From the NCBI RefSeq assembly GCF_006345805.1, contig NW_021833754.1:1-55153 (forward strand): 55,153 nt of DNA, given 5' to 3'. The notes beneath the pieces are model-generated. The model ran no database searches. It was not told the origin of the DNA and saw only the letters and a list, made by a program, of their open reading frames with translations. Shown here piece by piece: positions 1,131-11,965 of the stretch. The number at the start of each line of letters is the position of its first letter. Positions within the stretch are counted from its first letter, which is position 1. Position numbers and translations under genes: made by a program. This DNA comes from Octopus sinensis. Its lineage: Eukaryota.

Positions 1131-1176
1131 TTAGCGACAAAGCTCTGAAGATGCTGCGTGTGAGCAAATTGCGGCC
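1131..1176 (-). CDS. STMC6/Shisa-like protein, terminal coding exon 4 ((E)AAICSHAASSELCR*)
   Basis: Acceptor aatattcttag|G at 1177/1176. Phase 2 completes GAG from exon 3; 106-nt intron; in-frame TAA at 1133-1131. Confidence 0.6.
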
Positions 1177-1282
1177 CTAAGAATATTATTCAACTATGGT
1201 AGTAGTTGAATGATACACACACACGCACGCACACACACATACGCATTTAGCATAAATAGCACAAAATATGACGTATACGTAC

Positions 1283-1414
1283 TCTTTGATTATATAGTTC
1301 TTCAATGGTTGCTTTAGATTGCAATAGTCGACATCTTTGAAGAAGTAAAACAAAAGTATAACCACGACACTAACGATAAGGAAAATATAAACCCAGAGTT
1401 CAAACTGTTTTTTG
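1283..1414 (-). CDS. STMC6/Shisa-like protein, exon 3 (TM helix: KKQFELWVYIFLIVSVVVILLFYFFKDVDYCNLKQPLKNYIIK)
   Basis: Acceptor tttttttttccacag|C, donor GA|gtacgt. 132 nt, phase 2-2, matching the phase-2 end of exon 2 (CT+C=Leu). About 20-aa hydrophobic stretch. Confidence 0.85.
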
Positions 1415-1487
1415 CTGTGGAAAAAAAAAGAGAACAATTAGGCGTACGATGTAACATTTAATATGGTTCTTTATATAGTTATTTGCG

Positions 1488-1775
1488 GAGGTGCATGGTT
1501 TAGTGGTTAGGGTGTCAGCATCATGATCGTAAGATTGTGGTTTCGATTCCTGGACCGGGCAACGCGTTCTGTTCTTGAGCAAAACACTTCATTTAACGTT
1601 GCTCCAGTCCTCTCAGCTAGCAAAAATGAGTAACGCTGCGATGGATTGGCTTTAAAAGGGCGCATTTATTTTTCTGCGATGGACTGGCGTCCCGTCCAGC
1701 TGGGGGAACACATACGCCACAGAAACCGGGAAACCGGGCCCATGAGCCTGCCTAGGCTTGAAATGGGCGACATTT
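1488..1775 (+). mobile_element. tRNA-derived SINE, family A
   Basis: A-box/B-box-like head (tggtttagtggttagg...gtttcgattcc) and a core (gagcaaaacact...gttgctccagtc...cagct) shared with many copies in the window. Confidence 0.85.
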
Positions 1776-1804
1776 TTTTGTATAGTTATTTATATAAAAC
1801 AAGA

Positions 1805-2130
1805 AGGCTAATGGCTCAGTGGTTAGAGCTTCGGGCTCACAGTCATGAGGTATTGAGTTCGATTCCTAGACTGGGCTGTCTTGAGCAAGACAGTTTATTT
1901 CACGTTGCTCCAGTTCACTTATCTGTAGAAATGAGTTTCAATGTCACTGGTGTCAAGCTGTATCAGTCTTTGCCTTTCCCTTGGGTAACAGTGGTGGCGG
2001 GGAGAGGAGAGGCTGGTATGCATGGGCGACTGCTGGTCTTCCATAAACAACCTTACCCAGGACTCGTGCCTTGAGGGGAAATTTCTAGATCCGATCCCAT
2101 GGCCATTCATGACCGAAGGAGGTTTTACTC
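1805..2130 (+). mobile_element. tRNA-derived SINE, family A (long tail)
   Basis: Head tggctcagtggttagagc...gagttcgattcc; body matches 30685-30995. Confidence 0.85.
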
Positions 2131-2436
2131 TTTTATAAAACAATTTAAAAATGAAATATAATGTACTTTAAAAAAATGGCTCTTGTGATTTCTTTGTAGG
2201 AAAAATATTATGCAAGGTGGGTTGGTAGAATTGTTAACGCGTCGAACAAAATGTCTTGCAGTATTTCATCCAACTCCTTCTGTTCTGAGGTCAATCGCGC
2301 AGGGGGGTAGTTCTACCTTTTCTTCTTTTCGGGGGTTCGATGAAATATGATGCAGCTATCGAATATTAGAGTCGATGTAATTGCTGATGTTGCGCCAAAA
2401 TAAGGAACGGTTAAAAAGTTTAAAAAGAAAACAATA

Positions 2437-2650
2437 GGGCGGTGAACGGAAGAATCGTTAGCACGCTGGACAAAATACTTAGCGGCATTGCGTATGGCCT
2501 TTGCGTTCTGAGTTCAAATTCCACCGAAGTCAATTGTACCTTCCATCCTTTCTGGTCCGATAAGATAAGCACCAGTTCAACACTGAGGTCAATGTGATCG
2601 ACTATCCTCCAACCCACAAAATTTCAGGCCTTGTGCCAAAATTAGAGAGA
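2437..2650 (+). mobile_element. tRNA-derived SINE, family C
   Basis: ggcgg...atcgttagcacgc...gttctgagttcaaattcc...aagcaccagtt...ggtcaatgtgatcgac; diverged copy of the family C consensus. Confidence 0.8.
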
Positions 2651-2679
2651 AATATTACTATTGTATACATATAGGCGCA

Positions 2680-3057
2680 GGAGTGGCTGTGTGGTAAGTA
2701 GCTTCCTAACCAACTACATGGTTCCGGGTTCAGTCCCACTGCGTGGCATCTTGGGCAAGTGTCTTCTGCTATAGCCCCGGGCCGACCAATGCCTTGTGAG
2801 TGGATTTGGTAGACGGAAACTGAAAGAAGCCTGTCGTATATATGTATATATATGTATGTGTGTGTGTTTGTGTGTCTGTGTTTGCATGACAACCGATGCT
2901 GGTGTGTTTACGTCCCCGTCACTTAGCGGTTCGGCAAAAGAGACCGATAAAATAAGTACTGGGCTTACAAAGAATAAGTCCCGGGGTCGATTTGCTCGAC
3001 TAAAGGCGGTGCTCCAGCATGGCCGCAGTCAAATGACTGTAACAAGTAAAAGAGTAT
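2680..3057 (+). mobile_element. tRNA-derived SINE, family B (internal TA/TG microsatellite, taaaagag tail)
   Basis: ggagtggctgtgtggtaagtagcttcc...gggttcagtcccac...gcagtcaaatgactg...taaaagag; same as 13727, 22168, 51955 and 53025. Confidence 0.9.
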
Positions 3058-3065
3058 ACATTCGT

Positions 3066-9318: not shown

Positions 9319-9409
9319 TGTTTTATTTATATTCCTGAGCGCCATACTAATACAATTGTTTGTTTGTATTCCACCTGCCTTCGTCTTTTGTTTATTTCAT
9401 AAAGCTTCC

Positions 9410-9665
9410 CGTATATATATATACATATACTACATACATACATACATACATACATACATACATACAAATATATATATATATATAATATACTATATATATA
9501 TATTATATATATATATATATATATATATATATATACATACATACATACGTACATACATACATACATATATAATATATATATATATATATATATATATATA
9601 TATATATATATAATATATATATATATATATATATATATATATATATATATATATATATATATATG
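9410..9665. repeat. (TACA)n/(TA)n compound microsatellite
   Basis: Read directly. Confidence 0.95.
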
Positions 9666-10177
9666 TATGGTAAATGAAAGACGGAAGATGGAATATACGA
9701 GAATTTATTAATCACGACAGTTTTTTCGACACATCTAACATCGATGATTTATGGTGCTTTAGTCACATATTTAACAAATTCCTCTTCTTCTGCATTCGAT
9801 AATAAAACAAGAAAACAAAAATAAAGTAAACCTACAAAATGGCGTACCAACCCGATTACTACGAAAAGCTGTCATGTTCATCTAAAATTTGATTATCGTT
9901 AACTGTGATAAGCGGATTACCTCATGCTTTGAAAAAAAAAAAAAACTCCCCTTATTCTGCAAGAAGCTGAGACGTCCATCGGTGATACTTTTTACAGACA
10001 TTTTTCTCGAGTCTGTCCTAATTTTTCGCATTTTTAATCAAATATCTCATTACATAGCAAGATCAGATATTTTTAACGGTGGATATCAAAACCGTATCTC
10101 CTGCGGGAGATACTGAAAAAATATTGCAGAAGCAGAAAATATCAAGTTTATTTTTTTGTTGGATAATTAACAGGAGT

Positions 10178-10236
10178 GATTACAGGAGTGATCATGAAAT
10201 TTAATTACGTAGTCAAAGCGTTAATTAATCTGAAAT
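10178..10236 (+). repeat. 59-bp direct repeat, copy 1 (partner 11241-11299)
   Basis: gattacaggagtgatcatgaaatttaattacgtagtcaaagcgttaattaatctgaaat is present twice, 1063 bp apart. Confidence 0.95.
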
Positions 10237-10914
10237 AGCTCCGAAGATGACGAGGAGTATTATAGGAGCGTATAAAATCTTCCTTATAAAATATTTCGAA
10301 TATCAAAAACATTTGGAAACATTTAGGCTCTACACATGGTTCATTTATTCTGTAAGGGTGAAGTGGCAGGAAGTATAGAAATGCGTTAGGAGAACAATTA
10401 GAAATTGACATCGAATGTTTCTTGTTGTTTTCAACGGTTTAGTGAAGAGATGAGGCAGAGTTCATGACCTTCTCTGGCCCTCTGCTACAACTGATGTTAA
10501 GCATGGACATTTGTCAGTCAACGGTTGCAGAAAAGTATATGGATAAGGAGAGATGGAGGGCGCTGTACATAAGTGTGCGTGTTGTTTGTGTATATATATA
10601 TATATACAATTGAGATAGGGGTTGTAAATGCAACCCTCCATGGGATAACATATATCCAATATACTGCTAGTGAAGTACCCAACAAAGTTAATACATAAAT
10701 GTTAATGATTGCGATGTAATCAATTCATTTACTGTATTATATGGGCAAAGGTGTGTGTGGTTTAATAAAGTATGTGATTGAGTATTATCTGGTAATTGAT
10801 ATTTGATTTAGATGTATTTCTCCATTTTCTTATCTTGTATATATATATATAATATATATATATATATATATATATAATATATATATATATATATATATAT
10901 ATATATATATATAT

Positions 10915-11035
10915 AGGCCTGCTCGCTTAGCCAGCGGGGTGGCGTCATTGAAGGCTAAAACAATGCAAAGCGCATTGTGACCAGCGATGTGTAGCAACAT
11001 CTGATAGTCTGGTCGGTCACGGTGATCACGGTGAT
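10915..11035 (+). repeat. About 120-bp dispersed element embedded in (TA)n
   Basis: gaccagcgatgtgtagcaacatctgatagtctggtcggtca also occurs at about 29362-29405, again ending at (TA)n. Confidence 0.7.
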
Positions 11036-11240
11036 ATATATATATATATATATATATATATATATTATTATATAGAGAGAGAGAGAGAGAGAGAAATGTG
11101 TGTGTGTGTGCGTTTGCGTGGATTAGATCGATTAGGCCATTCAAGAGCTTTCATATGAACCACCAACTCTTGGTCGATGTCTATTACTTTATTTACTCAA
11201 TTAAATCCAATATCTCTCTCTCTCGCTCTGCAAATGATAA

Positions 11241-11299
11241 GATTACAGGAGTGATCATGAAATTTAATTACGTAGTCAAAGCGTTAATTAATCTGAAAT
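11241..11299 (+). repeat. 59-bp direct repeat, copy 2
   Basis: See 10178-10236. Confidence 0.95.
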
Positions 11300-11303
11300 T
11301 GTA

Positions 11304-11859
11304 CAAGGGTGAGTCAAAAAGTAACGCCATTTTGCTTAGAACAGGTATAATTACTAACACAAGAAGATGTGTCATACATCGAAATGAAGCTGGTCCTCTG
11401 TGGATCTCATCCCTATTTCTCAACATAGTCACTGTTTTTCTCAATGTTCTTCGAATGAGAACATGTATCCATGCCCTGTAAAATTCTGTTGACTGTTCTT
11501 TGAGCCACTTCTTCACTACAGTTTTCACTCCCTTCTCACTGGAACAATGTTTGCCTCTCAAACCCTCTTTCATGGGGCCGAAGAGATGATAGACTGAAGA
11601 CGCTAAATTATTCCAGTGACAAGGAAGTGAAAACTGTAGTGAAGAAGTGGCTCAAAGAAGTCGACAGAATTTTACGGGTCAGGGATACGTGCTCCCATTC
11701 GAAGGTGGAACATTGCTATTGAGAGAAACGGTGACTATGTTGAGAAGTAGGGATGGGATCCACAGAGGAACAGCTTCATTTTGATGTATGATACATGTTC
11801 CTGTGTTGGTAATTATACTTGTCCTAAACAAAATGGCATTACTTTTTGACTCACCCTCG
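11304..11859. mobile_element. Mariner-derived palindromic non-autonomous element (556 bp, TA target duplication)
   Basis: TA|CAAGGGTGAGTCAAAAAGTAACGCCATTTTG...CAAAATGGCATTACTTTTTGACTCACCCTCG|TA. Both arms (over 200 bp) are transposase 3' ends, translating to mariner-type KTVVKKWLKEQSTEFY...RWNIAIERNGDYVEK. Confidence 0.92.
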
Positions 11860-11889
11860 TATTTATGTCTGAATAAAGAAAATACTCAC

Positions 11890-11965
11890 CCGCAACTTTG
11901 GTTCCAATGGCAAAGTTTATAGAGAGTAAAACACAAAGGTATATCTGAAGCCGTAAACTAACCAT
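11890..11965 (-). CDS. STMC6/Shisa-like protein, first coding exon (signal peptide MVSLRLQIYLCVLLSINFAIGTKVA)
   Basis: ATG at 11965; 76 nt to donor G|gtgagt (phase 1; G+AC=Asp with exon 2). Basic residue plus hydrophobic core. Upstream acceptor gattttcag| at 11990/11989 implies a further 5'UTR exon. Confidence 0.8.

Follow-up and report, generated by a model that had tools for sequence, protein, structure and literature searches.

The question raised by this locus is what kind of gene lies on the minus strand of contig NW_021833754.1 of Octopus sinensis (55,153 nt, analysed at its full length and hereafter called the window). An initial annotation, made from the sequence alone, had proposed a hidden four-exon gene for a Shisa-like single-pass membrane microprotein of 133 amino acids (aa) with the six-cysteine architecture of the STMC6 group. 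The window is an entire unplaced O. sinensis contig, and it carries the first three of the four coding exons of LOC115230408. That this gene is real, and that its structure holds in the corrected form given here (Table 1), we regard as practically certain. The explanation that we favour as a whole, and consider fairly probable, is that this annotated gene belongs to a lophotrochozoan family with STMC6-type architecture, the products of which would act as adaptors.

A search of a collection of 5.8 billion proteins returned two proteins, P0001 and P0002. The former is the NCBI entry 'uncharacterized protein LOC115230408, partial [Octopus sinensis]' (132 aa), with 100% identity across exons 1-3, and the latter is 'uncharacterized protein LOC106875063 [Octopus bimaculoides]' (148 aa), with an identity of 82-83%. 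The gene is thus not hidden, as it was already annotated, as a partial model in O. sinensis and through its orthologue in O. bimaculoides. A literature search with the LOC identifiers of the gene gave no match.

The four segments proposed initially are bounded by GT donors and AG acceptors. Joined, they form a 402 nt open reading frame (ORF) with intron phases 1, 2 and 2, encoding the proposed 133 aa product letter for letter. An in-frame TAG is found 18 nt upstream of the start ATG, which has an A at position -3 and a G at +4. Exons 1-3 of this structure stand, as they match P0001 and are colinear with P0002. The O. bimaculoides gene consists of four coding exons (positions 10001-10076, 13926-14073, 15226-15357 and 16122-16212 of locus L001), with GT-AG introns at the same three positions, but its fourth exon is a different, distal one. 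Nucleotide identity between the two species is 71/76 in exon 1, 137/148 in exon 2 and 87.9% in exon 3, or 324/356 (91%) for exons 1-3 together.

Intron lengths of both species are given in Table 1. Short interspersed repeats resembling SINEs (short interspersed nuclear elements), approximately 160-190 nt long, are found in many copies in the introns of the gene in both octopuses, in O. bimaculoides for instance at L001 12196-13231 and 15839-16007. Much of the doubled intron length in O. sinensis is due to such copies.

The NCBI model of LOC115230408 extends from 11965 to 1243 in the window, which corresponds to contig VCDQ01002992.1 of assembly GCA_006345805.1, and is marked partial. It reads through the donor of exon 3, and the C-terminus of the deposited protein is therefore intronic and probably artefactual.

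The fourth exon is the part of the initial structure that did not hold. After ...LKNYLCK, the O. bimaculoides protein continues with KSNPSAERQLYFNNPMFEEGTKGTQKNNQY and a stop, which is unlike the EAAICSHAASSELCR ending of the initial product. The last exon of O. bimaculoides encodes ...SNPSAERQLYFNNPMFEEGTKGTQKNNQY, and the orthologous tail is approximately 48 aa long and contains YFNNPMF. The EAAICSHAASSELCR exon aligns to intron 3 of O. bimaculoides with 91.3% identity, compared to 87-94% in adjacent intron windows and 87.9% in exon 3, and finds no support as a coding exon. Its AG and its stop codon are kept in O. bimaculoides, and the four differences between the species comprise three non-synonymous and one synonymous change. 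The pyrimidine tract preceding it (AATAATATTCTTAG) is weak compared to the far richer tracts before exons 2 and 3. All that a terminal exon requires is an acceptor AG, and 62 of the 64 AGs downstream of exon 3 yield a stop-terminated exon in the right phase (24 of the 64 yield at least 15 codons), so that the EAAICSHAASSELCR exon does not rise above chance. With it, the length of 133 aa and the tail of about 33 aa lose their support.

We therefore consider it highly improbable that the locus holds an unannotated four-exon gene with a 133 aa product ending in EAAICSHAASSELCR, representing an STMC6 subfamily confined to cephalopods or molluscs and having a tail of 33 aa devoid of motifs. The in-frame GT-AG splicing of the four segments speaks for such a gene, as does the retention of the terminal ORF and its AG in O. 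bimaculoides, and the EAAICSHAASSELCR exon may be a minor alternative 3' end. However, both octopus species already have an annotation for the gene, the EAAICSHAASSELCR exon is conserved at the level of an intron with a 3:1 ratio of non-synonymous to synonymous changes and 62 of 64 AGs equivalent to its own, and the family reaches annelids and nemerteans, as described below. The O. bimaculoides orthologue and P0057, the closest relative outside the octopuses, also end in tails that are homologous to each other and differ from EAAICSHAASSELCR, namely [FY]F[ND]NPx[FY].

The counterpart of the distal O. bimaculoides exon was not found in window positions 1-1282 by tblastn, sensitive blastn or Smith-Waterman alignment. 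The best Smith-Waterman score was 15.5, compared to 13.8 +/- 2.2 for the shuffled null, and reflects only a chance 'KLYFN'. Colinearity with O. bimaculoides intron 3 extends from exon 3 to window position ~818, followed by unrelated sequence up to the contig end. This part of the window, for which O. bimaculoides lacks a counterpart, harbors a near-perfect, MITE-like (miniature inverted-repeat transposable element) palindrome of 188 bp and, between the palindrome and the contig end, AT and GT microsatellites.

The contig stops 1,282 nt past exon 3. In O. sinensis, introns 1 and 2 reach roughly double the length of their O. bimaculoides counterparts, and the true exon 4 is thus most likely located just past the available 1,282 nt, which would also explain the label 'partial' of the NCBI model. 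It could be argued instead that the O. sinensis gene is truncated or decaying, an insertion into intron 3 having displaced or destroyed the last exon and left a tail-less or aberrant product. The loss of colinearity at ~818, the palindrome and microsatellite sequence beyond it, the absence of an exon 4 remnant there and a dN/dS of 0.66 between the two octopuses are in line with this. We still find decay improbable, since the intron lengths lead us to expect exon 4 beyond 1,282 nt, exons 1-3 have kept every splice site and every invariant residue and are intact, and assemblies typically break within repeats, as at this contig end.

The predicted protein fits a type I single-pass microprotein with a cleavable signal peptide, an ectodomain of ~45 residues and one transmembrane (TM) helix. 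Hydropathy is 1.6-1.8 for the N-terminal residues 1-20 and peaks at 2.83 for residues 81-99. AlphaFold2 (AF2), run with the family alignment, gave a mean predicted local distance difference test score (pLDDT) of 80.9, with values of 85-94 for residues 31-70. The model has helices at residues 4-19 and 70-106 and strands at 29-32, 44-47, 54-56 and 65-67, each with a cysteine. The six ectodomain cysteines presumably pair into three disulfides. At the outer membrane edge lies a conserved Q-x-x-L-W motif, the octopus protein having ELWVY directly before the TM helix. Within the juxtamembrane K-D-x3-C, C106 is a candidate for palmitoylation. Hydropathy and the AF2 model thus agree with the STMC6-type architecture of the initial annotation, that is, a signal peptide, C-x15-C-x7-CC-x9-CC and one TM helix. 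A search of PDB sequences with the family profile gave only TMIE, with an E-value of 0.018 driven by the TM helix. An AF2 model of VOPP1, made for comparison of topology, had an ectodomain pLDDT of 47-59, too low to use.

An exhaustive HMMER search over 1.84 billion representatives gave 51 relatives at E<=1e-3, 14 of them at E<=1e-10, with E-values ranging from 7e-28 to 7e-4. The bivalve members come from Solemya, Potamilus, Argopecten, Dreissena, Mactra, Mya, Crassostrea, Mytilus, Mercenaria and Sinanodonta, and the gastropod members from Haliotis, Gigantopelta, Lottia, Patella, Elysia, Plakobranchus, Nucella, Littorina, Bulinus, Biomphalaria, Candidula and Bradybaena. Nemerteans are represented by Lineus and Tubulanus, and annelids by Capitella, Owenia and Ridgeia. 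The family is hence not restricted to cephalopods, nor to molluscs as the initial annotation had alternatively suggested. Judged by sequence similarity, it is a six-cysteine TM family spanning Lophotrochozoa (molluscs, annelids and nemerteans).

Conservation was counted in an alignment of 52 family sequences, some columns being scored over fewer of them. C31 is invariant in 51/51 sequences, N43, Y45, C47, C55, C56, C66 and C67 are invariant in 52/52, and K/R33 is universal. The conservation of the six cysteines expected from the initial annotation was thereby borne out. Strongly conserved positions are G38, T65, Q78, L81 (41/46), W82 (39/46), G83, D102 (34/42) and C106 (30/44). The consensus reads (T)KC-[YL]-K-x-E-x-LGD-x-x-GNVYYC-x-DP-x-KPECCE-x4-FTCCE-x8-REQLQLWG-TM-(K/R)D-x3-C. 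The window product shares every invariant column and carries the pattern that defines the family, KC-[x]-[KR]...G-[x3-4]-N-x-Y-x-C...CC...(F/Y)TCCE...Q-x-x-LW(G)-TM-(K/R)D-x3-C. Cysteine spacing is mostly C-x15-C-x7-CC-x7-CC in the family and C-x15-C-x7-CC-x9-CC in octopus.

The gene of Mya arenaria has the same four-part layout, with exons for the signal peptide, the cysteine domain, the TM helix and the tail. Its intron at ...KKTL|REQLILWG corresponds to ...KEDL|KKQFELW in octopus. The long intron of the M. arenaria gene (locus L007) also harbors extra copies of the cysteine-domain exon and one copy resembling the TM exon (3941-4227, 5904-6551 and 6894-7010). These copies could be tandem paralogues or alternative exons.

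P0057 (144 aa) was recovered at E 7e-28 through its fragment P0003. It is encoded by an uninterrupted ORF on contigs of ~1 kb from at least ten sequencing runs (SRR276660xx), most simply explained as transcripts. One of these contigs, L002, opens with a 21 nt poly(T) at positions 1-21, which suggests a cDNA origin, possibly as a chimera with, or an overlap of, an antisense polyadenylated transcript. The P0057 tail, ...EEEYYFDNPVYDNVLSG, is homologous to the exon 4 tail of O. bimaculoides and not to the EAAICSHAASSELCR tail.

In the summaries of the group given in two papers (PMC6125347, PMC11399591, both citing Pei and Grishin 2012), STMC6 proteins are single-pass proteins with six conserved cysteines in the ectodomain, an aromatic W-motif of the WY, WF or IW type at the membrane edge and a proline-rich PPxY tail. 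In the same summaries, the PPxY tail motifs bind WW domains, and WBP1L, CYYR1 and VOPP1 recruit NEDD4-family ligases via PPxY (PMC11399591, PMC6125347). The octopus protein has the type I topology, the C..C..CC..CC order and the membrane-edge tryptophan, and departs from this description in its tail. The initial annotation had listed the lack of PPxY as unusual. None is found in the orthologue, the O. sinensis tail itself being located outside the window.

We scanned the window product, the orthologue, the family consensus and all 52 members with 24,736 Pfam models. Weak matches were most frequent for WBP-1 (PF11669), found with three members and P0002, with 11-16 bits compared to a cut-off of 28.1 and a best E-value of 0.014 (15.7 bits). 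The match of P0024 joins residues 52-148 to profile positions 6-93, and that of P0002 (E 0.65) covers CC-W-TM. P0010 matches CYYR1 (PF10873) weakly with residues 47-102 (E 0.013, 16.4 vs 31 bits), and a single member matches DUF2650 (PF10853) with an E-value of 0.048, below the gathering score. That three of the few weak matches fall on STMC6 families exceeds uniform chance, yet cysteine pairs beside a TM helix could explain it, and we regard it as suggestive only.

The tails carry short linear motifs. These are YFNNPMF in O. bimaculoides, YYFDNPVY in P0057, and YYDNPAG and FFDNPVG in gastropods. The cephalopod form, YF(N/D)NP(M/V)(F/Y), is seen in O. bimaculoides and P0057, the tail exon of O. 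sinensis lying off the contig. PPLP(P) is found in 8 of the 52 members, and [FY]xNPxx in a few. FDNPVY is the classical internalisation signal of the LDL receptor, recognised by adaptors with a PTB domain.

The most likely role of the protein, which we put forward tentatively, would be that of a small transmembrane adaptor in trafficking. Through its knotted ectodomain and its TM helix it would associate with another membrane protein as partner, and the linear tail motifs would bring in sorting machinery from the cytosol and in this way control the endocytosis or trafficking of that partner. Candidate binders would be PTB-domain or clathrin adaptors for [FY]-x-N-P-x-[FY] in cephalopods, and WW or SH3 proteins for PPLPP in many gastropods and bivalves. 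Such control would be analogous to the PPxY-based recruitment of NEDD4 ligases by WBP1L, CYYR1 and VOPP1, through a different handle.

Several results weigh against the favoured explanation of a lophotrochozoan STMC6-type family of adaptors. The window product, the orthologue, the consensus and the 52 members all stay below the cut-off of every Pfam family. A search for genuine VOPP1 sequences gave 315 hits carrying VOPP1 Pfam domains, from which an alignment was made, and hhalign of the family against this alignment, in local and global mode, gave a probability of 1.5% for the full length and 0.6% for the ectodomain with the TM helix, with the cysteines out of register. Searches between the family and VOPP1 with hmmsearch were null in both directions. 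In UniRef, the member from Plakobranchus goes under 'CX domain-containing protein' and that from Capitella under 'VOPP1'; the latter has no measurable similarity to VOPP1. Foldseek of the AF2 family model against the PDB gave 0 hits. PPxY is absent from the O. bimaculoides orthologue and P0057, and a single PPFY occurs among the 52 members. The tail motifs are not conserved throughout the family, and the O. sinensis tail itself is unseen since its exon is off the contig. No octopus transcript of the gene was recovered from the protein collection. The family, of approximately 50 clusters, is unnamed and uncharacterised, with no Pfam model and no studied member. Finally, the dN/dS of the octopus pair stems from 8.5 synonymous and 22.5 non-synonymous changes and falls to 0.41 in the cysteine core; with only 31 substitutions in this pair, the case for constraint rests on deep conservation in the family and not on the pairwise ratio.

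The homology to Shisa, WBP1, VOPP1 and CYYR1 implied by the initial annotation is thus not statistically supported, and the resemblance to STMC6 is one of architecture and pattern. Remote homology to STMC6 is plausible to us, at a level just short of an even chance, and for the present we describe the relation as architectural analogy and not as demonstrated membership.

A somewhat more doubtful reading is that the family is an independent lophotrochozoan invention which resembles STMC6 by convergence, and that its members serve, for example, as auxiliary subunits or have a ligand- or receptor-binding ectodomain, and are not PPxY ubiquitin-ligase adaptors. The non-significant profile similarity to VOPP1, the sub-threshold level of all Pfam matches, the longer and different cysteine spacing, the absence of PPxY, and the invariant N43 and Y45, which VOPP1 lacks, all argue for this. 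On the other hand, the weak matches concentrate on three STMC6 Pfam families and lie over the CC-W-TM core. Convergence would also have to account for a shared set of ordered features, namely the signal peptide, C..C..CC..CC, the membrane-edge tryptophan, the cysteine that most members have at the cytosolic end of the TM helix, and tails of which many contain proline motifs. The most specific form of the homology reading, in which the family forms a branch present throughout Lophotrochozoa and sister to the WBP1/VOPP1/CYYR1 (STMC6) adaptors, with the PPxY/NEDD4 handle replaced by FxNPx[FY] or PPLPP, seems rather unlikely.

Other features of the window are listed in Table 1. A single-exon ORF of 734 aa encodes a protein with VIT (E 2e-27) and VWA (E 1.6e-24) domains. 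This gene is found upstream of the microprotein gene in both octopuses, confirming synteny. In a GT-rich minisatellite of ~2 kb, five or six frames stay free of stops over 650-750 aa; these 'ORFs' are artefacts and do not represent genes.

Table 1. Features of the Octopus sinensis window, with coordinates and strand
Feature	Position	Strand	Remarks
Coding exon 1, 76 nt; signal peptide MVSLRLQIYLCVLLSINFAIG...	11890..11965	-	ATG at 11965; followed by phase 1 intron, donor GTGAGT; same in NCBI P0001
Intron 1, 8,018 nt, rich in interspersed repeats	3872..11889	-	3,849 nt in O. bimaculoides
Coding exon 2, 148 nt; full cysteine-rich ectodomain DEGVKCLKAEELGDRPANVYYCPDPEKPRCCQPEGGVEYTCCEEKTKEDL	3724..3871	-	Six invariant Cys, N43 and Y45; donor GTAAGT
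Intron 2, 2,309 nt, phase 2	1415..3723	-	Position conserved in Mya arenaria; 1,152 nt in O. bimaculoides
Coding exon 3, 132 nt; KKQFELW motif, TM helix ~81-100, juxtamembrane KDVDYC...LKNYIIK	1283..1414	-	Donor GTACGT, phase 2
Intron 3, truncated, reaching the contig end	1..1282	-	True last coding exon outside the window; 764 nt in O. bimaculoides
Extension of the NCBI model past the exon 3 donor	1243..1282	-	14 extra codons, EYVYVIFCAIYAKC; ends where a GT microsatellite begins
'Exon 4' of the initial annotation (EAAICSHAASSELCR and stop)	1131..1176	-	Intronic; chance AG and short ORF
SINE-like repeat copies	1487..1679, 2725..2884, 4681..4853, 6122..6288		Further copies present
Palindrome, 188 bp	376..563		88 nt arms, 88% complementary, 12 nt loop
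AT and GT microsatellites	84..260		
VIT and VWA domain protein, single-exon ORF, 734 aa	32195..34399	-	
GT-rich minisatellite	35599..37671		36 nt period, ~56 copies, 84% matches

In brief, the gene model has been corrected, the O. sinensis model being partial as the contig ends in intron 3, and a family of approximately 50 clusters of six-cysteine single-pass microproteins has been delimited across three lophotrochozoan phyla. Should the link to STMC6 be true, it would extend this adaptor superfamily and indicate that sorting motifs other than PPxY can be used. If real, a sister branch of the known adaptors would mean that molluscs, annelids and nemerteans have transmembrane trafficking adaptors of a new flavour.

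Among known systems, kinship of the family with Shisa proper (Shisa1-9, including the AMPA-receptor auxiliary subunit CKAMP44/Shisa9) is not supported at all by the sequence comparisons. The two share the single pass, a cysteine-rich N-terminal domain followed by a TM helix and the concept of an adaptor. The octopus family has six ectodomain cysteines, whereas Shisa proteins have eight (C*C*CC*C*CC*C), and its members are far shorter, with no PDZ ligand seen. Shisa_N is absent among the Pfam matches listed at E<=1 for all 52 members. The initial annotation had drawn a connection to auxiliary subunits of AMPA receptors; nothing in our analysis connects the gene to glutamate receptors or to cephalopod-specific neurobiology.

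The likeness to LDL-receptor-type cargo with NPxY or FxNPxY signals lies in the tail. P0057 holds the hexapeptide FDNPVY, and O. bimaculoides has YFNNPMF. In contrast to such cargo, the short motif may be due to chance, is not family-wide and is unseen in O. sinensis.

CYYR1 and DUF2650 share the architecture of the octopus family, but PPxY and a tyrosine-rich tail are lacking in the octopus family. WBP1, WBP1L and VOPP1 have in common with it the signal peptide, the C..C..CC..CC order, the membrane-edge tryptophan, the single TM helix, a cysteine at the cytosolic end in most members and a short, motif-bearing tail. They differ from it in the cysteine loops, which are x15, x7 and x7-9 in the octopus family and approximately x12, x5 and x3 in VOPP1, and in the tails, where the octopus family has FxNPx[FY] or PPLPP in place of PPxY.

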